From Anaeramoeba ignava BMAN (taxonomy: Eukaryota > Protista > Anaeramoebae): a DNA stretch of 64,000 nucleotides. Below, piece after piece: positions 1,311 to 54,591 of this stretch; position 1 is the first letter of the stretch; each line of letters opens with the position of its first letter. The position numbers were made by a program, and so were the translations under genes. The stretch lies in NCBI GenBank assembly GCA_028826165.1, contig JAPDFW010000072.1, forward strand, positions 336,430 through 400,429, written 5' to 3'. Below the pieces are notes generated by a model, which did not search any database, had not been told where the DNA came from, and saw nothing but the letters and a program-made list of their open reading frames with translations.

Positions 1311-3763
<2,453 letters not shown>

Positions 3764-4089
3764 TTTAATTTAATTTTAATTTTAATTTTAATTTTAATTT
3801 TAATTTTCGTTTTTTTTTTTAATAATAATAAAAGAATAAAAATTAAAAAAAGGGAGAAAAAAAAAATGATTAAAAAAAAAAGGAGAATTTTAATAATTTT
3901 TTTTTATTTTTTTTTTCATTTTTTTCATTTTTTTTTAAATTTGTAAATAATTTTTATTAAAATAAAAAAAATTTTTTTTTCCTCTTTTTATAAATTATTT
4001 AATTAAGTTTCTCAAGCATTTATTTAACAATTAAATGTTTTATCTTAATCACAACACTTTTATGCAGAATTTCATTTTACATTTATATA

Positions 4090-4780
4090 GAAATATAAAT
4101 CAAATCTAAATATAAATATAAATATAAATATAAATATAAATATAAATCTAAATATAAATATAAATATAAATATAAATATAAATATAAATATAAATATAAA
4201 TATAAATATAAATATAAATATAAATATAAATATAAATATAAATATAAATATAAATCAAAATATAAATATAAATATAAATATAAATATAAATATAAATCTA
4301 AATATAAATATAAATATAAATCTAAATCTAAATCTAAATCTAAATATAAATCTAAATATAAATATAAATCTAAATCTAAATATAAATATAAATATAAATA
4401 TAAATATAAATATAAATATAAATATAAATATAAATATAAATATAAATATAAATATAAATATTAATTTAATTATAAATATAAATTTAATTATAAATATAAA
4501 TATAAATGTAAATGTAAATATAAATATAAATATAAATATAAATATTTAAATATAAATATAAATATAAATATGAATATAAATATAAATATAAATATAAATA
4601 TAAATATAATTATAAATATAAATATAATTATAAATATAAATATAAATATAAATATAAATATAAATGTAAATGTAATTATAAATATAAATATAAATATAAA
4701 TATAAATATAAATATAAATATAAATATTAAAATTAAAATAATATTAAAATTATAATTAAAATTATAATTAAAATTATAAT
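4090..4780. repeat. (TAAATA)n hexamer satellite upstream of the Alba gene
   Basis: Visible array with TAAATC/TAAATG variants. Confidence 0.93.
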
Positions 4781-16106: not shown

Positions 16107-19100
16107 TTAAATGAAATAAGTTTCAAGTTCATCAACAACCCATGAAGAATTAGAGCCAGCTAAATAACTTTGAGATTCATTTGTATTATAAGTAATTCCA
16201 TTAGGTAGATTATAACTTTGACCAAAATTTGACCAACCAGGTTGTAAATCAGATTTTAAATGAATATCACCTATATATATTTTAATAAAGATAAATAATT
16301 AATTTTAATAATAATTAATAATAATTTAATTTAAAATTAATTTTATTTTAAATTGAAATAATAATATTATTTATTATATTAATATTTTAGATTATTTATT
16401 AATTTAATTTTAATTATAATAATAAATATTTATTAAATATAAATTATTTACTCCCTATTTTAATAAAGATAAATAATTAATTTTAATAATAATTAATAAT
16501 AATTTAATTTAAAATTAATTTTATTTTAAATTTAAATAATAATATTATTTATTATATTAAAATTTTAGATTATTTATTAATTTAATTTTAATTATAATAA
16601 TAATTATTTATTAAATATAAATTATTTACCATCTATTTTAATAAAGATAAATAATTAATTTTAATAATAATTAATAATAATTTAATTTAAAATTAATTTT
16701 ATTTTAAATTGAAATAATAATATTATTTATTATATTAATATTTTGGATTATTTATTAATTTAATTTTAATTATAATAATAAATATTTATTAAATATAAAT
16801 TATTTACCATCTATTTTAATAAAGATAAATAATTAATTTTAATAATAATTAATAATAATTTAATTTAAAATTAATTTTTATTTTAAATTGAAATAATAAT
16901 ATTATTTATTATATTAATATTTTGGATTATTTATTAATTTAATTTTAATTATAATAATAATTATTTATTAAATATAAATTATTTACCATCTATTTTAATA
17001 AAGATAAATAATTAATTTTAATAATAATTAATAATAATTTAATTTAAAATTAATTTTATTTTAAATTGAAATAATAATATTATTTATTATATTAATATTT
17101 TGGATTATTTATTAATTTAATTTTTAATTATAATAATAAATATTTATTAAATATAAATTATTTACTCCCCTATTTTAATAAAGATAAATAATTAATATTA
17201 ATAATAATTAATAATAATTTAATTTAAAATTAATTTTATTTTAAATTGAAATAATAATATTATTTATTATATTAATATTTTGGATTATTTATTAATTTAA
17301 TTTTAATTATAATAATAATTATTTATTAATTATAAATTATTTACAATCTATTTTAATAAAGATAAATAATTAATATTAATAATAATTAATAATAATTTAA
17401 TTTAAAATTAATTTTATTTTAAATTTAAATAATAATATTATTTATATATTAATTAATATTTTGGATTATTTATTAATTTAATTTTAATTGTAATAATAAA
17501 TATTTATTAAATATAAATTATTTACTATCTATTTTAATAAAGATAAATAATTAATTTTTAATAATAATTAATAATAATTTAATTTAAAATTAATTTTATT
17601 TTAAATTTAAATAATAATATTATTTATTATATTAAAATTTTGGATTATTTATTAATTTAATTTTAATTATAATAATAAATATTTATTAAATATAAATTAT
17701 TTACCATCTATTTTAATAAAGATAAATAATTAATTTTAATAATAATTAATAATAATTTAATTTAAAATTAATTTTATTTTAAATTGAAATAATAATATTA
17801 TTTATTATATTAATATTTTGGATTATTTATTAATTTAATTTTAATTATAATAATAAATATTTATTAAATATAAATTATTTATATTTACATCCAAAAATTG
17901 GACCATAATTTAAATCATAATAAATTGCATATTTTTCTTTTCCTTGTTTAATTGTAAACTTATCTGGTTTTCTATCCCCTTTATCATTTCTTAATGAAAA
18001 AATAAATGCATTTGAATCTGGAATATATCCTTCTCCATAATTTGGATAAACCAACTTTGAATCTGAATCTAAATCTGAATTTGAATCTGAATCTGAAAAT
18101 GAGTCATTCCATTTTGATTTATCATTTGTAAATCCAACTTGAGTAAATCCTCCAAAAATAAAATTTTGTTTTGTTTTGATAATAATTAATGTTTTTCCTT
18201 TATCATCAACTGCTTTATGCCATTTTTTACAATTAAATCCATCTCTTTTTGCTGAAAATCCTTTTTTCATTTTAGAAAAAAAATCATTATCATTTATCCA
18301 TTCTTGTAATTTCTTAACATATTTAATATCTTTAATAATTTCTGAATTTGCAAATGCTTTTCCCAATTCCTTCATTTTCTTTTCATATTCCAAATCTTTT
18401 TGATATTGATCTCGATATTTATCAAAAATAGGTTTCATATCTTGATTTTCTTTGTTTTTATCTTCAACTTCTTTCTTCCATTTCTCTTCAATTTCTCTTC
18501 TTAAATTTAGATTTTCTTGTTCTGTAAATTCCAAAAGAGGTTGTTGAATTTGGCTCAAAAAAGATTTGGGAAGAAAAATATCAAATTGTTTTAATTTATC
18601 AAAATCTTGTTTTGAAATTGAATCTTTATCAAATAATGAAAAAAAAGAATGAAATAATCTTTTCTTTTCATTCATTTTGTGTTCATATTTCCTTAATTTT
18701 AATGATTTAACTCTTTTTTCAATCCAATTATTTAAAAATTGAAAAAAATTAAATTGAAAAATTTCTTTTTTTTCTTGTTTAAATTGAATAAATTTGATAA
18801 TTTCTTCTTTAGTTAAATTGAATAAATTCTCATTATTCTGAATTTGGGAAAAATTTTGATTTATTAATTCAAAACATTTTATTTCAATTTCATTTGAATT
18901 TAAATTTCGATTTTGGAATAAAAATTGGAAAAAATTTGAATAATTAATTGAATTTAAAATTTTTTTTTGAATAATTTCTTTCAATAAATTTAATTTAAAA
19001 TAAATTGAAATTTCCAATAATTGAATAAGATTTTCTTGATTCTCAAAAGAAATATTTCCATAATAAATATAACTCAAAATTGATTCCATTTCTTTTTTAT

Positions 19101-19383
19101 TAAATTGATTTAAAGAAATTTTATCAATATCGTTTTGTCCTCTTAAAAACTTATTAAAAAAAGAAGATCTTGAAGATAAAATTGATTTATGAACTTTAAT
19201 TTCAAAAGTATTTGATTTATTCTCAACAAAAATTGAAAAATCTTTAAATGAATTTCCATTTAAAAGGTTTGAATAATTTTTAATTAAATTTTTTGTTACT
19301 TTTTTTTCTAAATTTTTCATTTCATTTTCATTTTCATTTTGATTTGCATTTTCAATTTGGTTATTATTATTATTATTATCCAT
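16107..19383 (-). CDS. BTB/POZ + TLDc domain protein; exon 19383-17889, intron/micro-exon array 17888-16271, last exon 16270-16107
   Basis: FKDFSIFV...VHKSILSSRS (BTB); KRDGF...DDKGKTLIIIKT...IFGGFT...AFIFSL...YGPIFG then DIHLKSDLQPGWSNFGQSYNLP...YLAGS..WVVDELETYFI* in the last exon, which parallels the C-terminus of the paralog at 22565-24064. Confidence 0.9.
16271..17888 (-). repeat. Nine tandem copies of a 175-181 nt unit, each bounded by GTAAAT...TAG on the minus strand, separated by 3-4 nt spacers
   Basis: Units: 17708-17888, 17529-17704, 17348-17525, 17170-17344, 16990-17165, 16811-16986, 16633-16807, 16455-16629, 16271-16451. Confidence 0.95.
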
Positions 19384-19789: not shown

Positions 19790-20365
19790 CAAAATATTTT
19801 TAAATAATAAAATATTTAAATCTAAAACAATAAATTATTATTTTAATAATAAAATTAAATATTAATTTATATTTATAAATTAATTTATAAATTAAATATT
19901 AAATTAAATCTATTCTTATTTTTTATATTTATATGTTAAATATTTAAATAATAAAATATTTAAATCTAAAACAATAAATTATTATTTTAAACATGGAATT
20001 AAATATTAAATATTATTTTTAAATTAATTTATAAATTAAATATTAAATTAAACTTATTTTCATTTTTGATATTTATATGTTAAATATTTTTAAATAATAA
20101 AATATTTAAATCTAAAACAATAAATTATTATTTTAATAATAAAATTAAATATTAAATTATATTTTTAAATTAATTTATAAATTAAATATTAAATTAAATC
20201 TATTCTTCTTATTTATATTTATATGTTAAATATTTAAATAATAAAATATTTAAATCTAAAACATTAAATTATTATTTTAATAATAAAATTAAATATTAAA
20301 TTATATTTTTAAATTAATTTATAAATTAAATATTAAATTAAATCTATTTTCATTTTTTATATTTT
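19790..20365. repeat. Intergenic minisatellite, ~145-bp unit x ~4
   Basis: AAATAATAAAATATTTAAATCTAAAACA recurs at ~19802, ~19947, ~20092, ~20237. Confidence 0.88.
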
Positions 20366-20446: not shown

Positions 20447-22602
20447 ATGAATAATTTAATTTTTTTGCTTTTTATATTTTTTGCAATCCAAACAAGTAAA
20501 AATAAGAATTTAAAAGAAAAAAAAAAAAGAAAAAAAAAAGAAAATAAACAAATTTTTACTTTTTAATTTAATTTATAAGATGAACAAACATGTGAAACTG
20601 GAAGAATAACAAGATACACAGTTGGATCAAGTGGAGGACATCAAGCGGGAACTTGTGGTTTTGGACCTGTTTATAATGATGTTGCACTTTTTAAAGATAA
20701 TCTTATTGTTGCTGCTTCTCAAGATTTTTATAATGGTTTTCATACAAATCTTGATTTTTCTACAACTTGTATTACTCAAAATTTAGTTTCTTGTGGTTTG
20801 AGATGTGGTGAATGTGTTGAAATTACTGGAACAAAAGGTTCTTTGTATGTTTTCTTCCTTTTATAAATTAAAATTAAAATTAAAATCAGAATTAAAATTA
20901 AAATTAAAATTAAAATTAAAATTAAAATTAAAATTAAAATTAAAATTAAAATTAAAATTAAAAATTAAAATTAAAATTAAAATTAAAATTAAAATTAAAA
21001 TTAAAATTAAAATTAAAATTAAATTTAAATTTAAAATTAAAATCAGAATTAAATTTAAAATTAAAATTAAAATTAAAATTAAAATTAAAATTAAAATCAG
21101 AATTAAAATTAAAATTAAAATTCATTTATAAATTTAAAATTAAAATTAAAATCGGATATAAAATTAAAATTAAAATCGGATAAAAAATTAAAATTTCAAA
21201 TAAAAAAAGTCCATTTATAGTCGCAGATATTTGTGATTACAATGCAGTAGGAGAAGAATGCGGACAAAGTACAACACAATTTGACATTTCAGAATTTGGA
21301 CAAACAAGTGGAGAAGAATACTGGCGATGTTTAGCAGACTCATTAGGATATGAAGAAGCAACGTACAAAATAATACCATGTCCAACGGAAGGAAACATTG
21401 GATTTTACATGCCAGAATCAGGGTCTAATTCATACAGCGTTGCATTCACACCTTATAATTACAAAGTCGGAATTTCCAAAATGGAAAAAATAGGGGCAGG
21501 AAATGGAGTCAACACACCTAATGATTGGATGGAACTTCCGAGATCTTGGACTAATAAGTTTGAATGGAGAGGAGCAGGCAGCCAACAAATACCGGGCCAA
21601 TCAGGAGCTATTGAGAACGGAGGCACAGGTTTTCGGCTCAGAATCACTTCACTTTACGACGAGGTCATAGAGTCTGACATCATAACAATTCCAAGCCAAA
21701 ACCCGCAGGATTATCGTTACAGCTTCAATGCGCAATTTACCCAAACGCAGGCATATCCTTTGGGGTGTCCGTGGTCTGGACCTTCAAGAAAAATTTATGA
21801 TGAATCGGTCGAAGTCAGGAATACTCGACTGTATTTTGAGGGAAATGTATGGCTCACTGAATGGTGGTTTGTCACCCAATGGGGTCTTCCAAATATCAAC
21901 TTCGAATATTCTACGTCGTGCTCTAGCGGGAGTCATTGTATTTATACAGGTAGTGCTGACACCTCGGCTGGATTCATAATTGGATCATCTGCCGAATTTA
22001 ATTTTAATGCTTTTACAAGCCTTACTTTTAAAGCCAGAACCGTTTCGGGCACTTATTCTTCTTTGTCGCTTGTCTGGGATGATTGCTCAACTTATTATTA
22101 CGCTGGAGAAATTACTTCTTCTTGGCAAACCTTTACAATTCCAATGGATCAAATTGCTTGTGGTTCAAAAGCAAAAAATTTGAAATTTTTAGTTAATGGT
22201 TGTTCTGGTCTAGTTTTGGACCAGATCTCTCTTGTTTATGATGGATCTTCCCCCACTGGTTCTAACTTGGCTGATTGTGTTTATCCCCCTTCTTCGCCTC
22301 AAACTGATTCTTCTTCTTCAAGTAATACGGGTAAAATTGTTGGTGGTGTTTTTGCTGCTTTGATTGCTGTTTCTTTGATTGTTTTTGTTATTGTTTCTTA
22401 TAAGAAAAATAATTCAAGTGCGAAAATGATGTTTTTTTCTTGGAAACAATCCACTTCTTCTGCTTTTCACAAATGCAAATGTTGCAAAAAAAATAAATCA
22501 AAAAAAATTCAAAAATTCAAAAATTCAAAAATTCATTTTTTTTCTTTTCCAAAAATTTTTAAAAATGGAAAATTATTCAAATTTAGAAAAACTTTCAAAT
22601 GA
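20447..22602 (+). CDS. Expansin-like protein (signal peptide, DPBB + expansin C-terminal domain, probable extra carbohydrate-binding domain, TM helix); introns 20496-20579 and 20845-21209; true stop uncertain
   Basis: Spliced: MNNLIFLLFIFFAIQT..GRITRY..AGTCGFG..IVAASQDFY..CGECVEITG..FIVADIC..C..QFDIS..IPCP..W..LPRSWTNKFEW..FRLRITS; hydrophobic IVGGVFAALIAVSLIVFVIV. Confidence 0.82.
20860..21195. repeat. (TTAAAA)n satellite in expansin intron 2
   Basis: Visible array. Confidence 0.9.
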
Positions 22603-24064
22603 TTTAAAAAATTTATTTCAAAATCAAAATCAAAATGAAAATCAAAAACAAAAAAAAGAAGAAAGTTATTTTGATTTTGAAATAATTTGCGAACAAAATA
22701 AAATTTCATTTAAAACTCATAAATCAATTCTTTCTTCAAGAAGTGAATATTTTAAATCTCTTTTTGATTCTAAAATGAAAGAAAATAAAGAAAATAAATT
22801 AATTCTAAAAGATGTTCCAAGTTCAATTCTATTTTCAATTTTGAATTATTTTTATTCAGGAAAAATTGAAATTAATTTAGAAAATGCAATTCAAATTTTA
22901 ATTTTTTCATCAAAATATTTAATTAATGAATTAATTGAAATTTGTTTAAATTTTATCAAAAACAATTTACAATTTGAAACTATTATTGATGTTCTTAAAT
23001 TATCTGAAACAATGAACTTAAATCAATTATTAGATTCTTCTTATAAATTTATTTTAGAAAATTTTGAAAAATTTATTAAAACTTCATTTTTTCTTGAACT
23101 TGAAGAAAATCATTTAAATTTTATTTTATTAAATGATTTCATTCCAATAAATGAATTTGAAATGTTTCAATCAATAATAGAATGGGGAAAACATAAATCA
23201 AATATTAATCAAGAAAAAGTTGGAAAAAAAGAAAAAGAAAAATTACAAAATCAAATTTCAAATATTATTCATAAAATAAGATTTATTGATTTCACAAAAC
23301 AAGAAATTGAAGATACTTTCAAAGAAGATTTAATTCCAAATCAAATTTTTCAAAAATTAATTCAATTCCTGATACTTAAAGATCAAGAAAATGAAAAAGA
23401 ATTAAATGAATTCATTGAAAAAGAAAATCAAAATCAAAATCAAAATCAAAATTCATTCATTTTTAAATCAAGATTTAGATTTAATTCACAAATTATCAAA
23501 GAAAAAGAACATTTCAAGAAATTAAAAGAATGGATAAATGATGATGAATTCTTTTCCAAAATGAAAAAAGGATATTCAAGAAAAAGAGATGGATTTGATT
23601 CTAAAAAATGGCATTCAATTTGTGATAATAAAGGAAAAACATTAATTATTATCAAAACAACAAATAACTTCATTTTTGGAGGGTTTACTCAAGTTGGATT
23701 TACAAATGATAAATCAAAATGGAGAAAAGAAGATTCTAATAAAATTTATGGATATATTAAAGATCCAAATGCATTTATTTTTTCATTAAGAAATGATAAA
23801 AATGATAGAAACCCAGAGAAATTTCCAATTAAAAAAGATCAAGAAGAAAATGCACTTTTCTTTTATCCTTCAATGAGTGGGCCAACTTTTGGAAATGGAG
23901 CTGATTTTTGTTTAAATGCTAATTTACAAACTGGTTATTCTGATTTTGGTGAAAGTTACAATCTGCCTTATGAAATTAGACGGAATACATATGAATCAAA
24001 AAGTTATTTAGCTGGTTCTTATAATGAATGGATTGTTGATGAACTTGAAACTTTTTTCATTTAA
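22565..24064 (+). CDS. BTB/POZ-BACK-TLDc domain protein, intronless
   Basis: YFDFEII..HKSILSSRSEYFKSLF..MKE (BTB), BACK-like E-x3-F-x4-W, TLDc RDGF..CDNKGKTLIIIKT..IFGGFT..GPTFGNGADF..DELETF. Confidence 0.92.
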   Translation: MENYSNLEKLSNDLKNLFQNQNQNENQKQKKEESYFDFEIICEQNKISFKTHKSILSSRSEYFKSLFDSKMKENKENKLILKDVPSSILFSILNYFYSGKIEINLENAIQILIFSSKYLINELIEICLNFIKNNLQFETIIDVLKLSETMNLNQLLDSSYKFILENFEKFIKTSFFLELEENHLNFILLNDFIPINEFEMFQSIIEWGKHKSNINQEKVGKKEKEKLQNQISNIIHKIRFIDFTKQEIEDTFKEDLIPNQIFQKLIQFLILKDQENEKELNEFIEKENQNQNQNQNSFIFKSRFRFNSQIIKEKEHFKKLKEWINDDEFFSKMKKGYSRKRDGFDSKKWHSICDNKGKTLIIIKTTNNFIFGGFTQVGFTNDKSKWRKEDSNKIYGYIKDPNAFIFSLRNDKNDRNPEKFPIKKDQEENALFFYPSMSGPTFGNGADFCLNANLQTGYSDFGESYNLPYEIRRNTYESKSYLAGSYNEWIVDELETFFI

Positions 24065-27380: not shown

Positions 27381-30300
27381 ATGCCTCGTTTTTATGGATG
27401 TTATTTATTAACATCTTTAAATGAAAAATATAAAGATCATGCTTATATTGGATTTACAAGAAATCCGTTAAGAAGAATTAGACAACATAATGGAGAAATT
27501 AAAGGAGGTGCAAAAAAAACTTCTTTAAAAAGGCCTTGGGAATTAGTTTGTGTTATTTTTGGTTTTCCTTCTAGTTGTTTAGCACTTAGATTTGAATGTA
27601 AAAATTAAAATGAATTAGAAAATGAATTATAAAATCAATTATAAAATCAATTATAAAATCAATTATAAAATCAATTAGAAAATGAATTAGAAAATGAATT
27701 AGAAAATCAATTAGAAAATGAATTAGAAAATGAATTAGAAAATCAATTAGAAAATAAAAATGAAAATGAATTAGAAAATCAATTAGAAAATTAAAATCAA
27801 AATCAATTAGAAAATCAATATTAAAATAAAAATTAAAATCAAAATCAAAATCAAAATCAAAATCAAAATCAAAATCAAAATCAATTAAAAAATTAAAATC
27901 AAAATCAAAATCAAAATCAAAATCAAAATCAAAATCAAAATAAAAATAAAAATAAAAATAAAAATCAAATTCAAAATTAAAATCAAAATCAAAATCAAAA
28001 TCAAAATCAAAAATCAATTAGAAAATCAAAATCAAAATCAAAATCAAAATCAAAATCAAAATCAATTAAAATTAAAATCAAAACCAAAACCAAAATCAAA
28101 ATAAAAATCAAAATCAAAATCAAAATCAAAATCAAAATAAAAATAAAATTAAAATCAAAATTAAAACCAAAATAAAAATAAAAATAAAATTAAAATCAAA
28201 ACCAAAATCAAAATCAAAATTAAAATAAAAATTAAAATTAAAATCAAAATTAAAATTAAAATCAAAATCAAAATCAAAATTAAAATAAAAATCAAAATCA
28301 AAATTAAAATCAAAATGAAAATCAAAATCAAAACCAAAATAAAAATAAAAATAAAATTAAAATTAAAAAATCAAAATCAAAATCAAAATTAAAATTAAAA
28401 AATCAATATAAAAATCAAAATTAAAATCAAAACCAAAACCAAAATCAAAATTAAAATAAAAATTAAAATTAAAATCAAAATCAAAATAAAAATAAAAATA
28501 AAAATCAAAATCAAAACCAAAATCAAAATCAAAATCAAAATAAAAATCAAAATCAAAATCAAAATCAAAATAAAAATCAAAATCAAAATAAAAATCAAAA
28601 TCAAAATCAAAATCAAAATCAAAATCAAAATCAAAATTAAAATTAAAATTAAAATTAAAATTAAAATCAATATTAAAATAAAAATAAAAATTAAAATTAA
28701 AATCAAAATCAAAATCAAAATCAAAATTAAAATCAAAATAAAAATTAAAATTAAAATCAAAATCAAAATCAAAATCAAAATTAAAATCAAAATAAAAATC
28801 AAAATAAAAATTAAAATGAATTAGAAAATCAAAATTAAAATCAAAATCAAAAATCAAAATCTAAATCAAAATTAAAATCAAAATCAAAATCAAAATCAAA
28901 ATCAAAATAAAAATTAAAATCAAAATCAAAATCAAAATTAAAATCAAAATCAAAATAAAAATTAAAATTAAAATCAAAATCAAATTCAAAATAAAAATTA
29001 AAATCAAAATCAAAATTAAAATTAAAATCAAAATCAAAATCAAAATAAAAATTAAAATAAAAATCAATATCAAAATCAAAATCAAAATCAAAATTAAAAT
29101 CAAAATTAAAATTAAAATCAAAATTAAAATCAAAATCAAAATTAAAATCAAAATCAAAATCAAAATCAAAATTAAAATTAAAATTAAAATTAAAAATCAA
29201 AATTAAAATCAAAATTAAAATCAAAATCAAAATTAAAATCAAAATCAAAATCAAAATCAATATTAAAATTAAAATCAAAATCAATATTAAAATTAAAATC
29301 AAAATCAAAATTAAAATCAAAATCAAAACCAAAACCAAAACCAAAATCAAAATCAAAATCAAAATTAAAATCAAAATCAATTAAAAAATCAAAATCAAAA
29401 TCAAAATCAAAATCAAAATTAAAATCAAAATTAAAATAAAAATCAAAATCAAAATAAAAATTAAAAAATCAATATAAAAATCAAAATTAAAATTAAAAAA
29501 TCAATATAAAAAATCGAAAAAAGGGACTTGGCAAAACCCATACAAATCTTCAAAATTAAAAGAATTCCAAGAAAAAGGAATTTCAGGATTTGGAAATATT
29601 CACAAAGTAAAAGCAAAAGCAAGAATACTTTTTGAAATTTTAAATTCATCTCCATGGAAAAGATTACCATTACACATTCGCTTTTTCTCAGATCAACGAA
29701 TGGAACTAAGACAAAATTGTCCACAACAACCAGAACACATGAGCCTTGTATTAACAAACACTTACGAATTTGCAAAGGAAATGAAATTCACAGACGCACT
29801 TGATGCGATTGGTGAAAAAAAATCTCAATCAAATTCAAATACAAATTCATCAACAACAGAGAAGAATTTGGGAAAAAACATTAAGAATAAAGAAAATATA
29901 AAAAGCGAAAGTGAATCAAGTGAGGAATCAAGTCAAGAATCAAGTGAAAACGATAATGAATGTGAATTAGGGAAAAATCAACCGTTTGTTTTATCTCAAT
30001 TAAGTACTCAATGTTTTGAATGTAGTGAACCAATAAATCCTCAAAATCCTTATGTAGAATGCCCATTTTGCGCCTCAAAAGTCCATCTTCTTTGTATGGC
30101 AAGGATTTTCTTATCAAAATCACCTCAGAAATTATTACCAACTAAAGGAAATTGTCCTTGTTGTGGAAACCGTTTAATTTGGGGTGATATTGTTCGTGTT
30201 TCTCAAAAAGGAAAGCCTGGTTTTGAACCCTTTGTCCCAAAAACTAATTCCCATTCTTCTCGTTCTTTAACTTTTTCTGATTCTCTTCCTAATCTTAATC

Positions 30301-30673: not shown

Positions 30674-33600
30674 ATGGATTTATGGAAAATAATTGAAAAA
30701 AAAGATATTGAATCATTGAAAAAAATTAGTTCTATTGAGTTAAAACAAATGGAAAATGAAAGCAATACTTTATTAAATTTTGCATTTGAAAAAAAATTAC
30801 CTTTTGAAATGATTCAAATTTTATTATCAAAAGGAGTTGATCCAAATCTTCAAGATAATTTACAAAGAACATCTCTTCACTCAGCAATTCTAAATCATTC
30901 TGGAATGGAAATAATTGATCTTCTTGTTCAAAATGGAGTTGAAATTAATTCGGTTGATAATAAATCAAGAACTGCAATAATTTATTCAATCATTTACTCA
31001 AAAGAACCAGAAAACAAGGAAATACTTGAATATTTAATTGGAAAAGGAGCAGATATTCACACAAAAACAAAATCCAAAAAATCCCTTTTGCATTTTGCCT
31101 GCAAACACAGTTCGTTGGAAGTTATCAAATATTTAATTGATAAAGGAGTTGATGCTCATTCAAAAGCAGATTACAATAAAACCATTTTGCATTATGCTTG
31201 CAAAAGTAATTCATTTGATGTTATTAAATATCTTGTTGAGAAAGGTGTTGATATCCAATCCAAAACAACAGATGAACGAAATGCTTTGTATTTTGCTTGC
31301 AAAAAAAACACACTTGAAGTGATTAAATATTTGATTGATAAGGGAATTGATATCAATGAAGTATCTACTCAATACAAAAATATTCTCTATTCTGCATGCA
31401 GGAGAAATAACTTGGAAGTTATCAAGTTTCTTATCGAAAAGGGTGTTGATATCCATTCACAATCAAATATGAACAAATCCATTTTGCATATCGCTTGTAA
31501 AAGAAACAAATTGGAAGTTATCAAATATCTCGTTGAGGTTGGAGTTAATATTCACGGAAAAACAAAAGAAAACGAATCAACTCTGCATTTTGCTTGCCAA
31601 AAAAACACTTTGGATGTTATAAAGTATCTTATTGATAACGGAATAGATATTCATGAAAAAACCAAAGATGATGAAAACATTTTGCATTATGCTTGCCAAA
31701 AAAACACTCTGGATGTTATAAAGTATCTTGTTGATAACGGAATAGATATTCACGAAAAAACAAGAGATGATGAAGATGTTTTGTATTTTGCTTCCAGAAA
31801 AAATAACTTGGATGTTATCAAATATCTCATTGAGAAAGGAGCCATTCTTCATCAAAAAACAAGAAAAAATGAAAATGTTCTTCATTCTGCTTGCAAGAAA
31901 AATTCCTTGGAAGTTATCAAGTTTCTTATTGAGAAGGGAGCTGATATTCATTCCAAAACAAAGTATGAGGAAATACCTTTATATTTCGCTTGTGCAGAAA
32001 ACAATCTTGAAGTTATCAAATATCTAATAGAGATTGGAAGTGATATCAACGAAAAAACTGATGATCATGAATCATTATTGCATTCTGCTTGCAAAGATAA
32101 TAATTTTGATGTTATTAAATATCTTATTGAGAAAGGTCTCGATGTGAATTTGAAATCAAAATACAAAGAAACACCTTTCCATTATGCTTCCAAAGATAGA
32201 CCGTTAGCTGTTATCAAGTATATTGTTGAAAAAGGAGGCAATATGAATATCAAATCCAGATTCCACGAAACCCCTTTTCATTTGGCTTGTCGAGATAACT
32301 CATTTGATGTTATCAAATATCTTGTTGAGAATGGAGCAGATATTCATTCATCATCAGATACCAACGAAAGCGCTTTGCATCTTGCTTGTAGAAAAAATTC
32401 ATTGGAAATGGTCAAGTATTTGGTTGAGAAAGGTGTTGATATCCACCAGAAAACCGATGATAATGAAGATGCTTTATTTTATGCTGCTGAAGAAAACTCA
32501 CTGGATATGATCAAATATCTTGTTGAGAAAGGATTAGATATTAATGCTAAAAATACTGATGATGAATCAGTTTTGCATAGGGCTTGTAGTGATAATTCTT
32601 TAGAAGTTGTCAGATATTTTGTTGAAAAAGGGGCTGATATTTATTCCAAAAACAAAGATGATGAAACACCTTTACATGAAGCATGCAGAAAAAACACATT
32701 CGATGTTATCAAGTATCTTGTTGAGCAAGGAATAGATGTCAACTCAAAAAATAACGAGGATGAATCAGTTTTGCATTTTGCTTGTGAATACAGTTCTTTA
32801 CCCGCTATCAAATATCTTATTGAGAAAGGAGCGGATATTCATTTCAAAAGCCAAAAAAATCAAACATGCTTACATTATGCTTGCCAACGTAGCACATTTA
32901 ATGTGGTCGCATATCTTGTGGAGAAAGGACTTGATATCAATGCAAAAACAGATGAAGATGAAACACCTTTATATTTGGCTTGTAAAAGAAACACATTTCA
33001 AGTTGTCAAATATCTTGTTGAAAAAGGAGCTCATGTTCATTCTAAAAACAAAGAAGATGAAACACCTTTGCATTCTGCTTGTTCGTCCAATTCAATGGAA
33101 GTTATCAAATACCTTGTTGAAAAAGGAGCTGATATTCATGCCAAAAATGATGATGATGAAACACCTTTGCATTTCGCTTGTGAAAATAACTCATTTGAAT
33201 CAGTCAAATACTTGATTGAAAAAGGAGCCATTATTGATGTCAAAACAAAAAAGAATGAAACACCTTTACATTTAGCGTGCGAATATAATTCCTTACAAAT
33301 AATTCAATATCTTGTTGAAAATGGAGCATATATCGACATAGAAAACGAAGATAAACAAACACCCTTCCATTATGCATGCGAAGAGAACTCACTTGAATCA
33401 ATTAAATATCTTGTGGAAAACGAAGTCGACATCAAAGCAATAACAAAGGAAAAGGAAACAGCTCTGCATTTTGCTTGCAAATCAAACTCTTTTGATATTA
33501 TCAAGTATCTTGTTGAGATAGGATTGAATGTCAATGCAAAAAACAAAGACAAGGAAACTCCTTTGTATTTCGCTTGCAAAAAAAATTCACTGGATTCAAT

Positions 33601-35740
33601 CAAGTATCTTGTCGAAAAAGGAGCTCATATCAATGCAAAAACCAAAAGTAAAGAGTCTCCTTTGCATATTGCTTGTGAAAACAGCACGATTGATTCAATA
33701 AAATATCTAGTTGAAAATGGAGCTGAAATTAATGCAAAAACAGATACTAATGAAACACCTTTGCATTATGCCTCCAGAGATAATGTATTAGAAGTTGTCA
33801 AATATCTTATTGAGAAGGGAGCTGATATCAATGCAAAATCTGAAACTGAAGAATCTGCGTTGCATTTAGCATGCAATAAAAATTCGTTCGATATCGCACA
33901 ATATTTTATCAGTCAAGGAACAGATATCAATTCAAAAACAAGTGATAACGAAACACCTTTACATTATGCTTGCAAAAATGATTCTCTTGAATTTGTGAAG
34001 TTTTTTGTTGATAAAGGAGCTGATATCAATGCAAAAACAAGTGATAACGAAACACCTTTACATTATGCTTGCAAAGATCAAAACTTTCAAATTATCAAAT
34101 ATCTTATTGAAAAAGGAGCAGAAATCAACGAGAAAAGTTCATACCACGGCCAAACAGTACTTCATGTTTCTGCTAAATTTAATTCACTTCAGTCAATCAA
34201 ATATTTAATTGAAAACGGTGCTGATATCAATGCAGAAACCGATAGAAACGAAACAGCTTTGCATTTTGCAACAAAATTCAACTCGTTAAATGTAGTCAAG
34301 TATCTTGTTAAAAAGGGACTTGATGTCAATCACAAATCAGAACATGATCAGGTTCCTCTTCATTTTGCTTCTGAATTCAACTCTTTGCAAGTGGTTAAGT
34401 ATCTTGTTGAAAAGGGAGCTGATATCAACGCAGAAACTGATGAAAAGGAAACTCCTCTTCATTTTGCTTGTGAATTCAACTCATTAAATGTGGTTATGTA
34501 TCTTGTTGAAAAAGGAGCAGATATCAACGCAAAAACAATCAATGGAGGAACACCCTTATCTTTTTGTTGTGAATTTGACTCGCTCAGAAAACTCAAATTT
34601 ATCATGGATCAAGGAGCTGATTTCACAGTTAAAAAAGATGATGACCAAACTCTTTTGCATATTGCTTGTGAATCAAGTTCATTGAAAGTCGTCAGATATC
34701 TTGTTGAGAAAGGAATTGATGTTAATGCAAAAACAACCGAAAAGGAAACAGCTCTTTCCATTTCAATTCATAAGAAAAACTTGAATGTCGCAAAGTTTTT
34801 GATGTTGAACGATGCAAACTTTTTTGATTTGAAACAAAAATATATCAAGGAAGATTATGTCAAAGCATTCTTCAAAATTTATTCCATTAACACAGATTTG
34901 AATAAGTTTGTAAACTCAAGAGAATTTTCAGATTTGAAAATCAACAAGGATCGTTCTTCAAAATTCCAAATTCATCTTCATAAACCAATTTTATTAGCAA
35001 GATTCAATAACGACCAATCAATCATTCAAAAATTCCTTGATATTTGTCAAGAAAAACCATTTGAAATTGCTCAATTTGCAGTCAATTTTATTTATACAGG
35101 ATTTCCCAATTTTAATAAATCAAATGAATTTGAAGAAATCATTTCACTTCATAAAAAACAAAAAGAACAAAAAAAGAAAACAAAGAAAAAATCTGATTCT
35201 GATTCTGATTCTGATTCTGATTCTGATTCTGATTCTAATTCTAATTTTGATTTTGATTTTTTTTCTGATAAAAAATTTACAGAATATTCTAAAAACAAAA
35301 TTCTTTTCGATGAAATTGATAAAGAAGAGGAAATGAATAAATTATTTGAAGAAATTGGATTAGATTCAAATTGGATTGAATCAAAAAAAGGAAGAAAAGG
35401 AATATTGAAAGATTTCCATGAATTATATCAACAAGAATCATCAAAAGATTTCACAATAATTTGTTCAAACGAAAAGGAAATCAAAGTTCACCAATTTATT
35501 TTAATGTTGAGAAGTGATTTGTTTAGAGGAATGTTTCTAAATGTTCAAGACTCTTCTAATAAAGTTCATGATTATTCAGGAAAATCATTTGAAACAATTC
35601 AACAATTAATTTATTTCTTTTATCATGATGAATTTGATAAATCATTAATGAATCAAAAAATTATTGATGAACTTTCAGATGCAAAAGATTATTTCCAATT
35701 AAATCAAAATTCAATTATTGATTTAATTTTATTCGATTAA
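30674..35740 (+). CDS. Ankyrin-repeat protein (roughly 40 repeats) with C-terminal tandem BTB/POZ module
   Basis: 33-aa TPLHxAC...VKYLVEKGADINAK repeats; FSDLKI..LHKPILLAR and KDFTII..KVHQFILMLRSDLFRGMF. Confidence 0.93.
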   Translation: MDLWKIIEKKDIESLKKISSIELKQMENESNTLLNFAFEKKLPFEMIQILLSKGVDPNLQDNLQRTSLHSAILNHSGMEIIDLLVQNGVEINSVDNKSRTAIIYSIIYSKEPENKEILEYLIGKGADIHTKTKSKKSLLHFACKHSSLEVIKYLIDKGVDAHSKADYNKTILHYACKSNSFDVIKYLVEKGVDIQSKTTDERNALYFACKKNTLEVIKYLIDKGIDINEVSTQYKNILYSACRRNNLEVIKFLIEKGVDIHSQSNMNKSILHIACKRNKLEVIKYLVEVGVNIHGKTKENESTLHFACQKNTLDVIKYLIDNGIDIHEKTKDDENILHYACQKNTLDVIKYLVDNGIDIHEKTRDDEDVLYFASRKNNLDVIKYLIEKGAILHQKTRKNENVLHSACKKNSLEVIKFLIEKGADIHSKTKYEEIPLYFACAENNLEVIKYLIEIGSDINEKTDDHESLLHSACKDNNFDVIKYLIEKGLDVNLKSKYKETPFHYASKDRPLAVIKYIVEKGGNMNIKSRFHETPFHLACRDNSFDVIKYLVENGADIHSSSDTNESALHLACRKNSLEMVKYLVEKGVDIHQKTDDNEDALFYAAEENSLDMIKYLVEKGLDINAKNTDDESVLHRACSDNSLEVVRYFVEKGADIYSKNKDDETPLHEACRKNTFDVIKYLVEQGIDVNSKNNEDESVLHFACEYSSLPAIKYLIEKGADIHFKSQKNQTCLHYACQRSTFNVVAYLVEKGLDINAKTDEDETPLYLACKRNTFQVVKYLVEKGAHVHSKNKEDETPLHSACSSNSMEVIKYLVEKGADIHAKNDDDETPLHFACENNSFESVKYLIEKGAIIDVKTKKNETPLHLACEYNSLQIIQYLVENGAYIDIENEDKQTPFHYACEENSLESIKYLVENEVDIKAITKEKETALHFACKSNSFDIIKYLVEIGLNVNAKNKDKETPLYFACKKNSLDSIKYLVEKGAHINAKTKSKESPLHIACENSTIDSIKYLVENGAEINAKTDTNETPLHYASRDNVLEVVKYLIEKGADINAKSETEESALHLACNKNSFDIAQYFISQGTDINSKTSDNETPLHYACKNDSLEFVKFFVDKGADINAKTSDNETPLHYACKDQNFQIIKYLIEKGAEINEKSSYHGQTVLHVSAKFNSLQSIKYLIENGADINAETDRNETALHFATKFNSLNVVKYLVKKGLDVNHKSEHDQVPLHFASEFNSLQVVKYLVEKGADINAETDEKETPLHFACEFNSLNVVMYLVEKGADINAKTINGGTPLSFCCEFDSLRKLKFIMDQGADFTVKKDDDQTLLHIACESSSLKVVRYLVEKGIDVNAKTTEKETALSISIHKKNLNVAKFLMLNDANFFDLKQKYIKEDYVKAFFKIYSINTDLNKFVNSREFSDLKINKDRSSKFQIHLHKPILLARFNNDQSIIQKFLDICQEKPFEIAQFAVNFIYTGFPNFNKSNEFEEIISLHKKQKEQKKKTKKKSDSDSDSDSDSDSDSNSNFDFDFFSDKKFTEYSKNKILFDEIDKEEEMNKLFEEIGLDSNWIESKKGRKGILKDFHELYQQESSKDFTIICSNEKEIKVHQFILMLRSDLFRGMFLNVQDSSNKVHDYSGKSFETIQQLIYFFYHDEFDKSLMNQKIIDELSDAKDYFQLNQNSIIDLILFD

Positions 35741-41800: not shown

Positions 41801-44800
41801 TTTGTTTTCTTTTTTAAATTCCAAAAATAATCGAAATCCTTTTGAATTTTTTTTTAAAAAACTAAATATTTTTGTTCTATAATTTTGATTTTGATTTTGA
41901 TTTTGATTTTCATTTTCATTTTCAATTTGATTTTCATTTTCATTTTCAATTTGATTTTCATTTTCATTTTCAATTTGATTTTCATTTTCATTTTCATTTT
42001 CAATTTGATTTTCATTTTCATTTTCAATTTGATTTTGATTTTGATTTTCATTTTCATTTTCATTTTGATTTTGATTTTGATTTTGAATTTGATTTTCATT
42101 TTCATTTTCATTTTCATTTTCTAATTGATTTTGATTTTGATTTTCATTTTCATTTTCATTTTCATTTTCATTTTGATTTTCATTTTGATTTTGATTTTGA
42201 TTTTGATTTGGATTTTGATTTTGATTTTGATTTTGATTTTCATTTTCATTTTGATTTTCATTTTCATTTTGATTTTGATTTTGATTTTGATTTTCAATTT
42301 GATTTTCATTTTGATTTTCATTTTCATTTTCATTTTGATTTTCATTTTGATTTTCTAATTGATTTTGATTTTGATTTTCATTTTCATTTTCTAATTGATT
42401 TTGATTTTGATTTTCATTTTCATTTTGATTTTTATTTTCTAATTGATTTTCAATTTGATTTTCAATTTGATTTTCAATTTGATTTTCATTTTCATTTTCT
42501 AATTGATTTTGATTTTGATTTTGATTTTGATTTTCAATTTGATTTTCATTTTCAATTTTATTTTCATTTTGATTTTCATTTTGATTTTCATTTTGATTTT
42601 CATTTTCATTTTCAATTTGATTTTCAATTTGATTTTCAATTTGATTTTCATTTTCATTTTCATTTTCATTTTGATTTTCATTTTGATTTTCATTTTCATT
42701 TTGATTTTCATTTTGATTTTCATTTTCAATTTTATTTTCATTTTCATTTTCATTTTGATTTTCATTTTCATTTTGATTTTTATTTTTATTTTGATTTTCA
42801 TTTTGATTTTCATTTTCAATTTTATTTTCAATTTGATTTTCAATTTGATTTTCAATTTGATTTTCATTTTCATTTTCTAATTGATTTTGATTTTGATTTT
42901 CATTTTCATTTTGATTTTGATTTTGATTTTCATTTTCAAATTGATTTTCAAGATCTTCAATTCTTATCCAAGTAAGAAAACTGAAATTTTTGGAAACTAA
43001 TTCATTTTTAAAAATTGGAAGTTGAATATTTGAATTTATATCATAAAAATCAAAGAAATTTATAGGATTTTCATGATTTTGATGATTTATCATTTTTTGT
43101 AATTCAACTATCATTAATTTTGCAAAAGAATATCTTTTGTTTCTTTTTTTTAAATTGTCTTTCAAAATTGAGAAATATTGTTTCATTTCAGAAACAAGAA
43201 TTTTATATGGTCCAAGTTTTCCAATGAATTGAATAGTTTGATTGAATAATTCTAAATTTTGAATTTTGGGGATTAATTTAAGTAAAAAAGCAACAACTCC
43301 TTTTTCACAACAACAATAAATATTATGAATTGAATCTTCACAAATGTGATTAAATTTTTCTAATACCTCAATAAAAGAAAATTCATTAATTTCAATTTCA
43401 ATTTCATTTTGATTTTGATTTTCTCTTAAATTTTTGGAATAAAGCTGTAAAATTAAATTTATCATATCTGGATTTGTGATAACCAATTCATTTTCTTTTG
43501 AAAACTTCCTGTGATTGATCATCAAATCAAAAAAAATGTAAAATAATTTTTTTGTTGGTTTTCGTTTCTCTTTTTCATAAAGTATATTAATAAATTCTGA
43601 TTCTGAAATGATTTTATGGAATTTAGAAGTGATTGTTTGATTATTTCTCATAAATTCTTTCCAAATTGTTAAAATCAAATAAATAGATTGTTGGCTTTTT
43701 TCTTTTAATAAATTTTTGATTTTGGTTAATAAATCAGAATATAAAATTATTTCTTGAATAACTTCTTGATTTTTTGAAATTGATTCTGAACATTTTAAAA
43801 TGAGTTTTTCAACATTCTTAAATTCACAGTTATCTACTTCTGTACATAAAAAAAGTAATACTTCAAATAAATCAGAAATGAATTGCTTTCCATTTTGCAC
43901 ATTTTCACTTTTTGTTTTTTCAATTATTTGTGGGATATGAATTAAAGGAATTTTTTGAGTAGTTTCATTGTGAAATAATTTAATGAAAGAATTATAAATG
44001 TGTTGATTTCGTAAAATAATTTCAATATCTGAATTTTGAAGTGCTGAATCCAAAATTTCTAAGCATAAATTAGTTGTTTTATTTTCTTTTTCTTTTTCTT
44101 TAATTGATTGAAATAAAATTTCTTGGAAATTAGTAAATATTTTAGCTCCAATAATTTGATTTGATAGAATTTGATGTTTAGTTTTGATAATTTCAATTAT
44201 CATTTGGAAAAATTGATGTAATAAGAATAAATTTAATTTTATGCTTTCATTTTGGAAAATTTGATTAAATAGGAATTGGTAATCGAAATATTCTGGATAT
44301 TTTATAATAGATTTAGATATAAAATCAATTAATAATGTCTGCAAATTTATAACCATTTCATTTAGATTAATATTTTTATTTGTTTCAAACTAATTGAAAA
44401 ATAAATATAAAAGATGAAATGAATAATTTAATTTTTGTTTTAGTTTTTGTTGAGAAAAAAAAAGAATGATTTACATGTAAATTAATGTGATTTTCTTTGA
44501 TAAAATAATCAGAAAAAAAAACTTTCCAACCATCATTACTTTGAAAAAAATTAAATAATTCTTTATCATTATTACCTTCAATCATCATTTTCTTGAATTC
44601 AAATAAAATATAAATTTGGAGTTCTGGATAAATATTTTTGATATATTCTTGGAATTGAGTTTTTTGTTTTGGGAATTTGTGAATTGAAGATGAATTTTCT
44701 ATATTTTGATCTGAATCTTTTTCTTCTAAATTTTTGAACAAATTGAGATGAACTAAAATTAATCTTTCTTCGAAATTATTAACTTTTATTTTTGTTTCAT

Positions 44801-46913: not shown

Positions 46914-51231
<4,318 letters not shown>

Positions 51232-51344: not shown

Positions 51345-52670
51345 AAATTTATTAAATAAATCTTTATTAAATTTATTAATTAAATCTTTATTAAGTTTAT
51401 TTATTAAATCTTTATTAAATTTATTAATAAAATCTTTATTAAATTTATTAATAAAATATTTATTAAATTTATTAATTAAATATTTATTAAATTTATTTAT
51501 TAAATATTTATTAAATTTATTAATTAAATATTTATTAAGTTTATTTATTAAATATTTATTAAATTTATTAATTAAATATTTATTAAATTTATTAATTAAA
51601 TCTTTATTAAATTTATTAATTAAATATTTATTAAATTTATTAATTAAATCTTTATTAAATTTATTAATTAAATATTTATTAAATTTATTAATAAAATCTT
51701 TATTAAATTTATTAATAAAAATATTTATTAAATTTATTTATTAAATCTTTATTAAATTTATTTATTAAATCTTTATTAAATTTATTTATTAAATATTTAT
51801 TAAATTTATTTATTAAATATTTATTAAATTTATTTATTAAATCTTTATTAAATTTATTAATAAAATCTTTATTAAATTTATTTATTAAATCTTTATTAAA
51901 TTTATTTATTAAATCTTTATTAAATTTATTAATAAAATCTTTATTAAATTTATTAATTAAATCTTTATTAAATTTATTAATTAAATATTTATTAAATTTA
52001 TTAATTAAATCTTTATTAAATTTATTAATAAAATCTTTATTAAATTTATTAATTAAATCTTTATTAAATTTATTTATTAAATCTTTATTAAATTTATTTA
52101 TTAAATATTTGTTAAATTTATTAATTAAATCTTTATTAAATTTATTTATTAAATCTTTATTAAATTTATTAATTAAATCTTTATTAAATTTATTAATTAA
52201 ATCTTTATTAAATTTATTAATTAAATCTTTATTAAATTTATTTATTAAATCTTTATTAAATTTATTAATAAAATCTTTTATTAAATTTATTAATAAAATC
52301 TTTTATTAAATTTATTTATTAAATCTTTTATTAAATTTATTTATTAAATATTTATTAAATTTATTAATTAAATCTTTATTAAATTTATTAATTAAATCTT
52401 TATTAAATTTATTAATTAAATCTTTATTAAATTTATTAAATAAAATCTTTATTAATTTTATTAATTAAATATTTATTAAATTTATTAATTAAATCTTTAT
52501 TAAATTTATTAATTAAATATTTATTAAATTTATTAATTAAATCTTTATTAAATTTATTTATTAAATATTTATTAAATTTATTAATTAAATATTTATTAAA
52601 TTTATTTATTAAATCTTTATTAAATTTATTAATTAAATCTTTATTAAATTTATTTATTAAATCTTTATTA
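51345..52670. repeat. ~24-bp intergenic satellite (TTTATTAAATTTATTAATTAAATC)n
   Basis: Visible array between the TDP1 stop codon and the Rab start. Confidence 0.93.
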
Positions 52671-54591
52671 AAAAAATGGATTTCTCCAAGGTAAATCTTC
52701 ATCTTCATATTTTGAAGGTGGATATGTAAAAGGTAAAAAATTTGTTAATTCTTCTTTTTCTTCTTTTTTATTCTTCATTTCAAATAAGATTACACTTGTT
52801 TCATAATTATAAATCACTAATTTTGAATTTCGATCATGATAAATTTTTCCCCAAGCAGACTAAATATAAATTTTATTAACAAAAAAAAAAAGTGGAATAA
52901 AATTTGATTTAATTTTTGTTTTGTTTTTTGTTTTGTTAATAAAATTAATTCAATACAGAAGAAAAATTATGAGATCCAATACAATAATAACGAAAATAAG
53001 GATGTTCTGCAATAAGTATTTTTGAATGAAGAATTATATTTTGTCTTGAAAAAATTGAAGAGACACATTCATACATAAATGGTTTAAGAATTGAATAAGC
53101 AGAAGATTCTTGTTGAAAAAAAAGTTGACCAATTCCATTCAAATGTTCAAAATTTTGTATTAATTTTTTCATTATTGATTGAGAAGGATAAACAATTTTC
53201 AATAAATTAATATTAGAATTAGAATTAGAATTAGAAATTTTTTTTTCATCTTCTTTTTTCTGATTTTGATTTTCATAAATTTGTTTTCCACAAGCATGAG
53301 TAATAAAATCATGAATACGATCTTGGTTGTCATATTTACCAATTGAAGATGCTTGAAACATTAAAGAATCAAAAGGGAATTTTTCAAAAGGAATTTTGAT
53401 ATTTTGATTTTCAATTTTCATTTCATTTGAATTTTCATTTGAATTTTCATTTGGATTTTCATTTGAATTTTTTTCATTTTGGATAAATTGTATTGATAAA
53501 AATTTTTGAACAATATCATTGAGTTGAAATAAACCAACTTTCCATGTATTAAAATTTCTATGATTTCCAGGAATTGAAAATATTAACTGAGCATTGGCTA
53601 AACTGAAATCAAATGGAGAAACAAAAATAGGAATTAACCAATAAAGTTTACAAGTTATTAAAAATAAATTTAATTGAGTTTCAAAATTTGTAATTGTATT
53701 TTTGATTGAATCTTCTTTTTCCTTTTGAAATAAAGGGAAATCTTGAAACCAAATTACTTGACCAATTAAATTCCAATCCTCAAATGTTAAATTTGCAGAT
53801 GAAACAACAACTCTTAATTTTGTTTCATAAACTAAAAGCAAAATTTTTGAATGAAAATAACCAAATTTCATTTTTGGAGGATAAAATAATCGAATATTTT
53901 TGTATTTTTCATTTTCTATTTCTTTTTCTCCTGGTTTTTGTATTTTTTGATTCCAATCTGCTATTAAATAAATTGGAATATTTTTTGGAAATGATGAAAA
54001 TATGAAATCGATATCATAAACAAAACTTGTTAGAAGAACTTTTTTAACATTTTTTCCAATAATTTCTTTGAGTGAAATGAAATATTTTTTTTGATTTTGA
54101 TTTTGATTTTGAATTTTATTTTGAATTTTATTTTGAAAGAAAATCTTTCCATCTGTTTCAATTTCAATTTCATTTTGATTTTGATTTTGATTTTGATTTT
54201 GATTTTGATTTTGATTTTGATTTTTATTTTGAATTTTATTTTTATTTTGATTTTTAATTTGATTTTGGTTTTGATTTTGATTTTGATTTTGATTTTTATT
54301 TTGATTTTGATTTTGGTTTTTATTTTGATTTTGATTTTGATTTTCAATTTGAATTTGATTTTGGTTTTGGTTTTGATTTTGATTTTCATTTTGATTTTGA
54401 TTTTGGTTTTGGTTTTGATTTTGATTTTGATTTTGATTTTCAATTTGAATTTCATTTTGATTTTGATTTTGAATTTGATTTTGATTTTGATTTTGATTTT
54501 GATTTTGATTTTTATTTTCATTTTGATTTGAATTTAAAGAATTGTAAATTGCATTTTGTAACATTATTTCTTCAGAATTATTAGAATTCAT
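52668..54591 (-). CDS. TDP1: Tyrosyl-DNA phosphodiesterase 1; intron 52860-52956
   Basis: Two HKN motifs (FHSKILL..LRVVVSSANL; LHSKIL..IGSHNFS|SAWG), W.QDFP, LIFSIPG, SSIG, NYE, LPF..P..Y...D.PW. Confidence 0.92.

Follow-up and report, generated by a model that had tools for sequence, protein, structure and literature searches.

Introns are said to arise from tandem arrays with repeated splice sites, as Zhuo et al. reportedly described in PNAS in 2007, and the micro-exons of 3 nt or less of animals and plants, in which a one-codon exon lies between two ordinary introns and splicing is sequential, are to our knowledge single and rare. In intron gain by tandem genomic duplication (the Rogers model, with examples in potato RdRp (PMC4974935) and in Drosophila (PMC2891723)), an exonic AGGT segment is doubled and one new intron results. 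In the human polyubiquitin gene UBC, tandem dual-specific splice sites pair stochastically (PMC10809524), while at the ratchet points of recursive splicing (Drosophila Ubx and others; PMC8605326, PMC6224609) an acceptor adjoins a donor inside a long intron that is removed stepwise. Introners (Micromonas and others; PMC3488318), finally, are many near-identical introns of one genome that are dispersed into unrelated genes. Here we describe an arrangement that touches on all of these, found in a 64,000-nt stretch of the genome of Anaeramoeba ignava BMAN (contig JAPDFW010000072.1, 336,430-400,429 of the forward strand; hereafter the window, whose positions are used below), where nine head-to-tail GT...AG units fill positions 16271-17888 of the minus strand of a BTB-TLDc gene. 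We are highly confident that this array is one instance of a family-wide "intron plus one codon" tandem cassette, in which a phase-1 BTB-TLDc intron was duplicated together with 3 nt, giving arrays of 2-29 units that occupy one and the same codon in at least 43 young paralogues under diversifying selection, with the unit found in no other context. At a probability of roughly 0.55, we further propose that each unit would be removed as its own short intron and that the triplets would be kept in the mRNA as one-codon exons, by which a hypervariable hairpin of the TLDc domain would grow longer.

The features of the array, of its host gene and of the neighbouring paralogue are as follows.

17889-19383, minus strand: exon 1, encoding the BTB domain and the first part of TLDc and ending ...YGPIFG (ATG at 19383, last base T at 17889; Pfam BTB 1.1e-14, TLD 1.4e-10; residues 1-498 of the annotated protein P0001)
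17708-17888, minus strand: unit 1, 181 nt, GTAAAT...AAAATAG, with an extra ATAAAT after the donor hexamer, as in the first units of most paralogues
17705-17707, minus strand: spacer 1, ATG
17529-17704, minus strand: unit 2, 176 nt
17526-17528, minus strand: spacer 2, ATA
17348-17525, minus strand: unit 3, 178 nt, the most diverged copy, with 8-10 differences from each other unit
17345-17347, minus strand: spacer 3, ATT
17170-17344, minus strand: unit 4, 175 nt
17166-17169, minus strand: spacer 4, GGGA, 4 nt, frame-breaking if included
16990-17165, minus strand: unit 5, 176 nt
16987-16989, minus strand: spacer 5, ATG
16811-16986, minus strand: unit 6, 176 nt
16808-16810, minus strand: spacer 6, ATG
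16633-16807, minus strand: unit 7, 175 nt
16630-16632, minus strand: spacer 7, ATG
16455-16629, minus strand: unit 8, 175 nt
16452-16454, minus strand: spacer 8, GGA
16271-16451, minus strand: unit 9, 181 nt, with the 3' end ...AAAATATATATAG, a longer form typical of last units (AAAATATTTATAG in most paralogues)
16107-16270, minus strand: exon 2, in which GT finishes the split codon and is followed by 53 codons, DIHLKSD...VDELETYFI, and a TAA stop at 16107-16109
22565-24064, plus strand: neighbouring intronless BTB-BACK-TLDc paralogue, 499 aa, with the loop FG-NGA-DF inside the exon (from the list of open reading frames and Pfam)

GTAAAT opens all nine units, AAAATAG closes units 1-8 and ATATATAG closes unit 9, and Tandem Repeats Finder reports an array of 9.0 copies with a period of 178 and 96% matches. 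A preliminary description of the window had seen here nine whole GT-AG introns with these starts and ends, which is borne out by our unit parse and by the repeat finder, and all eight of its spacer sequences and coordinates proved exact. Each unit, taken alone, has the GT-AG ends of a spliceosomal intron (9/9), and all of the sense-strand G's of the array (27/27) sit in GT, AG or spacers. The array splits a codon between ...TTT GGA T and GT GAT ATT..., that is, in phase 1, and the proposed arithmetic, by which removal of the whole array gives FG-C-DI while keeping ATG and GGA gives FG-YGS-DI, is also right. A strict recursive-splicing ladder with zero-length exons, which the same description had considered, does not fit, since 3 nt lie between each AG and the next GT. 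Differences between the units of this array have no periodic or lag structure; a 4-unit higher-order repeat, at which the spacer pattern had hinted, was rejected because the unit differences carry no lag-4 signal.

A two-unit query found at least 594 matching places, spread over 17 or more contigs of this 42.8-Mb genome, with 95-99% identity and always in tandem arrays, and the exact junction pattern has 239 genome matches against 0 for its reversed control, which places the array pattern far beyond chance. Array 3' ends number 43 genome-wide when at most one mismatch is allowed, and the exact last-unit ends are followed in 34 of 34 cases by the TLDc exon start NTGAT, so that the unit is restricted to a single site in a single gene family. 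The loci inspected were the window and 30 others, some 13 arrays (on contigs C1, C66, C82, C91, C139 and C143) lying outside this inspection. Wherever array ends were visible at the 30 fetched loci, the array stood at the homologous position of a paralogous TLDc gene, between a shared 5' flank (...GGTCCAnnTTTTGGA(GGA)N, then GTAAAT) and a shared 3' flank (...TATTTATAG, then NTGATATT). In 27 gene models, the arrays (3-29 units each) lie at the same phase-1 site, all flanks belong to the same family, and in every case removal of the whole array brings back phase 1 together with a conserved last exon of 53 residues that has VDELETYFI at its end. A two-unit array at one further fetched locus brings the overall range to 2-29 copies, and one paralogue has a single-unit intron (C66:152019-152217). 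A genome-wide search for such junctions in other BTB-TLDc paralogues, as the preliminary description had proposed, thus finds arrays in at least 43 of them.

A database search with the exon-1 protein found at least 236 A. ignava BTB/TLDc proteins, with all of the 120 matches listed coming from A. ignava; the protein-database members of the family are genome-derived models only. Since pS between the array-bearing paralogues is 0.079 and pN is 0.12-0.16, we conclude from these substitution rates that they are a young family under diversifying selection. Over the last 140 TLDc codons (27 loci including the window) pN/pS is 1.5-2.0, and the whole C-terminal half of TLDc, beyond the loop, appears to be under such selection. 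Unit identity is 97.6% within arrays and 97.2% between arrays. Concerted evolution of the introns, which could have been read from 97% identity of units versus 85% of exons, was dropped as an explanation because pS is only 0.079 and pN/pS is 1.5-2: a young, star-like radiation with fast-evolving exons gives both values and no homogenisation is needed. Spacer orders are unrelated between arrays, with positional orthology of spacers at chance level, and identical spacers are neighbours 37 times where 21 are expected. The idea that the last spacer captures each gene's own exon start was also considered, and this was not seen by eye. The earlier suggestion of intron gain by tandem duplication caught in the act is therefore half sustained: duplication of an intron plus 3 nt fits the DNA, with NTG as the start of exon 2, but the event is neither private to this gene nor in the act, as it is family-wide in at least 43 paralogues with unrelated spacer orders.

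Variation was followed site by site across 218 aligned internal units. Their consensus shows no G outside the GT and the AG, and the units, which are about 97% A+T, G-free inside and 175-181 nt long, fit the length and composition of A. ignava introns. At the A/T sites the minor alleles average 0.9%, while the four C sites, with decay of 16-52%, carry several alleles, which is what strong AT-biased mutation would produce. Of the 218 units, 216 retain the G of GT and 211 that of AG, and canonical junctions amount to 271 of the 282 expected. On either reading of the C-site variation, as recent decay or as old polymorphism, there are two options: decay spares the internal splice sites, or the spacers evolve far faster than all else. 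Both suggest that the internal junctions are seen by the cell.

The spacers are exactly 3 nt long in 306 of 322 junctions (95%) and never 0 nt. Base frequencies of the 306 3-nt spacers are as follows.

Position 1: A 56%, T 25%, G 11%, C 8.5%
Position 2: A 3%, T 83%, G 14%, C 0%
Position 3: A 25%, T 29%, G 40%, C 7%

The commonest spacers, NTG with its one-step derivatives, agree with the three bases that open exon 2 (NTGAT), and the block that is repeated is therefore best described as an intron plus 3 nt. The stable middle T of the spacer would be the third codon position in the phase set by the exons, and this excludes stop codons. Between adjacent 3-nt spacers there are 2 phase-1 stops, versus 7.4 expected under independence or 5.4 in within-array shuffles (P = 0.04); the corresponding numbers are 6 in phase 0 and 71 in phase 2. 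All of the fully parsed arrays built solely of 3-nt spacers (13/13) can be read through without a stop.

An excess of 3-nt gaps extends to the genome as a whole. The pattern W6-TAG-N(k)-GTAAAA, an intron-like acceptor followed by a donor, was counted genome-wide together with a reversed-pattern control, with these results.

k = 2: 57 matches, reversed control 1003
k = 3: 463 matches, reversed control 350
k = 4: 26 matches, reversed control 369
k = 6: 54 matches, reversed control 958

Gaps of exactly 3 nt between acceptor and donor are thus enriched 10-20 times over gaps of 2, 4 or 6 nt. For the rarer donor GTAAGT there were 4, 15 and 11 matches at k = 2, 3 and 4, and 5 of the 11 at k = 4 come from one tandem repeat. 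Most of the k = 3 cases among those listed lie in sequence contexts other than the TLDc unit, and the first 100 listed k = 3 triplets include 2 stop triplets, versus about 9.6 expected from base composition. These counts support the view that an intron followed by 3 nt and another intron would be a regular, tolerated gene structure in A. ignava, and the lack of enrichment at 6 nt hints that an intron-creating mechanism in this genome may tend to leave exactly 3 nt. Two other loci came to light in these counts. At a multi-copy locus on contigs C25, C27, C28, C40, C42 and C51, two candidate one-codon exons (GAA and TAT) lie about 110-120 nt apart with identical flanks on the six contigs, and this locus may represent another family with serial 3-nt exons. 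In a tandem repeat with a 495-nt period (C83:167346-169837, minus strand), the acceptor-4 nt-donor junction TAG ATGT GTAAGT occurs five times, an intron-like arrangement with a frame-breaking gap.

The annotated A. ignava protein P0001 is identical to the exon-1 protein over its residues 1-498, and its 552 aa correspond to 498 + 1 + 53. The host gene matches the Pfam TLD profile (PF07534), with E-values of 1.4e-10 and 4.7e-16. Its TLDc model is confident (pLDDT 88), and Foldseek matched it to the TLDc domains of NCOA7, OXR2 and Skywalker with a probability of 1.0 and TM-scores, by target, of up to 0.80. In this predicted structure, the junction residue is placed in a tight turn that connects two short strands, and across an alignment of 70 family members the turn is 1-9 residues long, being shortest in the array-bearing genes if their arrays are removed whole. 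The preliminary description had argued from the similar lengths of FG-YGS-DI and of FG-NGA-DF in the intronless paralogue, an argument that is weak given a loop of 1-9 residues across the family and normal-looking FGGGDI or FGSDI loops after whole removal. The possibility that the spacers are remnants of an older, long loop-coding sequence was rejected, as the spacer translation is unlike the intronless loops. The TLDc domain also has a second variable, low-complexity insert (DSDSNSDLDSDS..., 18040-18100, minus strand, residues about 105-124), and only there is the confidence of the model low (pLDDT 52-55).

How the array would be processed is suggested by the introns of this organism, which in strain BMAN are most often 76 nt long (the mode), average 300 nt, reach 4168 nt in the longest annotated case and contain 8.1% GC (PMC11550330, supplementary note 1). 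By this measure whole arrays would be extreme length outliers and single units are ordinary, and with introns as short as these, the splicing of a donor to an acceptor at 175 nt would probably be preferred over one at 1.6-5.2 kb. In the reading that we favour, units would be excised one by one, each donor pairing with the acceptor about 175 nt downstream, and each retained triplet would lengthen the hairpin after GPxFG of TLDc by a single residue, in most cases D, Y, N, V, F or I. Variety would reside chiefly in the DNA, as each gene copy has its own number and spelling of triplets, while out-of-register pairing of the identical splice sites may skip some triplets and add further variety. We also consider, as a speculation that is unlikely to hold in full, that the hypervariable binding loop of this large BTB-TLDc family (probable cullin-3 adaptors) may work as a "codon accordion" that would speed the evolution of the loop, written codon by codon with up to 28 three-base exons, in which the identical introns would be recombination handles that let arrays grow, shrink and reshuffle, and in which stochastic pairing of sites would add loop variants for each gene.

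Several observations weigh against the splicing of one triplet after another. Of the 15 models mapped from the public annotation, 14, the window gene included, have the array taken out whole, which gives normal-looking loops such as FGGGDI or FGSDI, while the residues that the triplets would encode (D, Y, F, V, I) are unlike the glycine-rich loops of the intronless paralogues. Spliceosome footprints are too large for both sites of a 3-nt gap at once; the gap would thus bar simultaneous binding at an acceptor and the next donor, which cannot be occupied together, and removal would have to be stepwise. The N-T-N pattern of the spacers can be explained neutrally, by AT-biased decay of the two G's of a founder GTG around a stable T, an account that fits well at spacer position 3 and more poorly at position 1; because it exists, the variability of the spacers is not counted for diversifying selection. 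Spacers of other lengths than 3 nt make up 16 of 322, and 11 of the 27 arrays, that of the window among them, are not readable through with every spacer kept, although the TLDc exons still look intact in 7 of these 11. Non-readable arrays occur in 3 of 5 genes with exon lesions versus 7 of 22 intact genes, numbers too small to count.

In the window gene, reading all eight spacers shifts the frame at the 4-nt GGGA and then meets a stop. The earlier claim that the frame is kept and that no stop can arise therefore stands for subsets without GGGA and fails for those that include it. GGGA differs from the GGA of spacer 8 by one extra G in a G-run, and with spacer 4 as GGA all eight triplets would be read through. 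It could be a homopolymer error of the long-read assembly, a skipped spacer or the mark of a freshly disabled gene; a base-calling error is conceivable because the assembly is long-read and short-read polishing is unreliable inside 97%-identical repeats. Elsewhere, too, the frame-breaking spacers are mostly homopolymer-length changes (GGGA, TTTG, CTTT, TTTA).

Many of these points would be accommodated if the whole array were spliced out as one intron, from the first GT to the last AG, with internal sites and spacers as inert relics of duplication and spacer G's decaying by AT-biased mutation. This alternative, which we hold to be doubtful but by no means negligible, coincides with the annotated models, from a study that described stranded RNA-seq of A. 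ignava BMAN and mapped RNA-seq with a 10-kb intron limit (PMC11550330); it always preserves phase 1 with plausible loops, and the frame-breaking spacers in 11 of 27 arrays favour it. The G of spacer position 3, moreover, is kept in 40-44%, near the 48% of the non-splice site C97, and in stability the middle T is much like other A/T sites. What removal as a single intron leaves unexplained is that 97-99% of the internal GT and AG G's are kept versus 16-52% decay at every other G/C site, in introns that otherwise avoid sense-strand G, and it likewise does not account for the depletion of phase-1 stops or for the 10-20-fold genome-wide excess of 3-nt gaps over those of 2, 4 and 6 nt. With an intron mode of 76 nt, the nearest acceptor, 175 nt away, should also beat one at 1.6-5.2 kb. 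An improbable alternative, already raised in the preliminary description, is a regulated or stochastic combinatorial cassette, in which transcripts of one gene would keep different subsets of triplets and thereby produce many loop variants. Near-identical internal donors and acceptors could pair stochastically, as the tandem dual-specific sites of human UBC were shown to do (PMC10809524); the frame survives with any subset of 3-nt spacers, the middle T (83%) excludes stops, and skipping would rescue arrays with a 4-nt spacer such as that of the window. The sequence statistics favour use of the internal splice sites, by which the triplets would be exposed to translation. The diversity that is visible, however, lies between gene copies, with spacer orders unrelated between arrays, and no selector or docking structures were seen, although no search for them was made.

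Two further explanations concern the origin of the arrays rather than their splicing. It is very improbable, in our judgement, that they were built by repeated insertion of a mobile, introner-like element or reverse-spliced intron beside existing copies with a 3-bp target duplication, even if identity is nearly the same within arrays (97.6%) and between them (97.2%), no lag structure is seen in the window array, no spacer order is common to different arrays, and the commonest spacers repeat the three bases with which the downstream exon begins, in the manner of a target duplication; the genome-wide 3-nt gaps with 6 nt unenriched would also suit such a 3-nt-gap-making mechanism. Against this, the unit is at only one site of one gene family (34/34 exact ends), no convincing terminal inverted repeat and no coding capacity are evident, with only a 7-nt complement found by eye between the outer ends, and both the identical neighbouring spacers (37 versus 21 expected) and periodic runs of 2-3 units point to local duplication, while the young, star-like family (pS 0.08) accounts for uniform identity without mobility. 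We would give almost no weight to a repeat inflated or invented by the long-read assembler, the artefact that the long-read basis of the assembly (PMC11550330) and the presence in the DNA runs of only about half of the sampled words of the stretch might suggest: the architecture recurs at 43 loci on many contigs, each with its own spacer series and copy number and in register with intact flanking exons, and an artefact would not generate ordered, locus-specific triplets.

Other features of the window were noted. Just upstream of the start codon of the array gene, towards a GC-rich open reading frame, lies a tandem repeat with a 144-nt period (19792-20364; 3.9 copies, 91% matches). This 397-aa reading frame (21409-22602, plus strand) lies in a GC-rich island (34-45% GC versus 19% for the window) between the two TLDc paralogues and has a hydrophobic stretch near its C-terminus; it had no Pfam match and may be a laterally acquired or otherwise foreign gene. 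A repeat with a 99-nt period and 26.5 copies (31493-34119, plus strand), whose consensus is a 33-residue ankyrin repeat, makes a long, uninterrupted ankyrin-repeat coding array. Short-period satellites with units of 6-24 nt and 0.7-3.4 kb each occupy 1913-3463, 4087-4779, 27787-29498, 41882-42950, 47054-50461, 51345-52672, 55529-56675, 57895-58927 and 61866-63295.

Searches of the Anaeramoeba literature turned up no mention of the arrays, and we did not find this gene layout in print. If the triplets are spliced in as we propose, the arrays would contain the longest known run of one-codon exons, the spliceosome would routinely handle 3-nt exons in series, and a family under diversifying selection would possess a new means of changing both the length and the make-up of a protein loop. 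Should the triplets not be spliced in, the arrays would be a clear and datable case of whole-intron tandem duplication and would pose the puzzle of dozens of perfect internal splice sites that are conserved yet ignored. In both cases, the published models make one intron of each array, with lengths of up to about 4 kb that rank among the longest annotated, and may mis-state the proteins.

In none of the known relatives do whole-intron units go together with exons of 3 nt, a series of up to 29 copies and a spread across dozens of paralogues. As in tandem genomic duplication (PMC4974935, PMC2891723), the extra GT...AG introns lie in a coding region and the copies are head-to-tail direct repeats that span an intron and flanking exon bases. 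No exonic AGGT was duplicated here, however, as every copy comes with a full donor and acceptor: an intron that already existed was repeated whole, with 3 nt, up to 29 times, and at least 43 paralogues inherited the result, instead of one segment being doubled once. With UBC and the tandem-array introns, the arrays share repeats that each bear donor and acceptor signals and thus allow many pairings, but there the units are coding and whole coding units are removed, whereas the A. ignava units are non-coding introns and the "exons" only 3 nt; acceptor and donor are also separate (AG-NNN-GT), in contrast to the one shared AGGT of the tandem-array cases. A ratchet point (PMC8605326, PMC6224609) has AG directly followed by GT, a zero-length exon of which nothing is left, whereas the 3-nt gap would leave a codon at each step, and only about 7% of the spacers begin with GT and could be true ratchet points. 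The near-identity of many introns in one genome recalls introners (PMC3488318), yet the A. ignava unit is tandem and restricted to a single homologous site of one family, with no copies in unrelated genes (34/34 exact ends and 27/27 modelled flanks in one family). A further likeness is to the micro-exons of animals and plants, from which the A. ignava arrays differ in that up to 28 such exons would stand in a row between identical introns, in a genome with a large overall excess of exactly 3-nt gaps.

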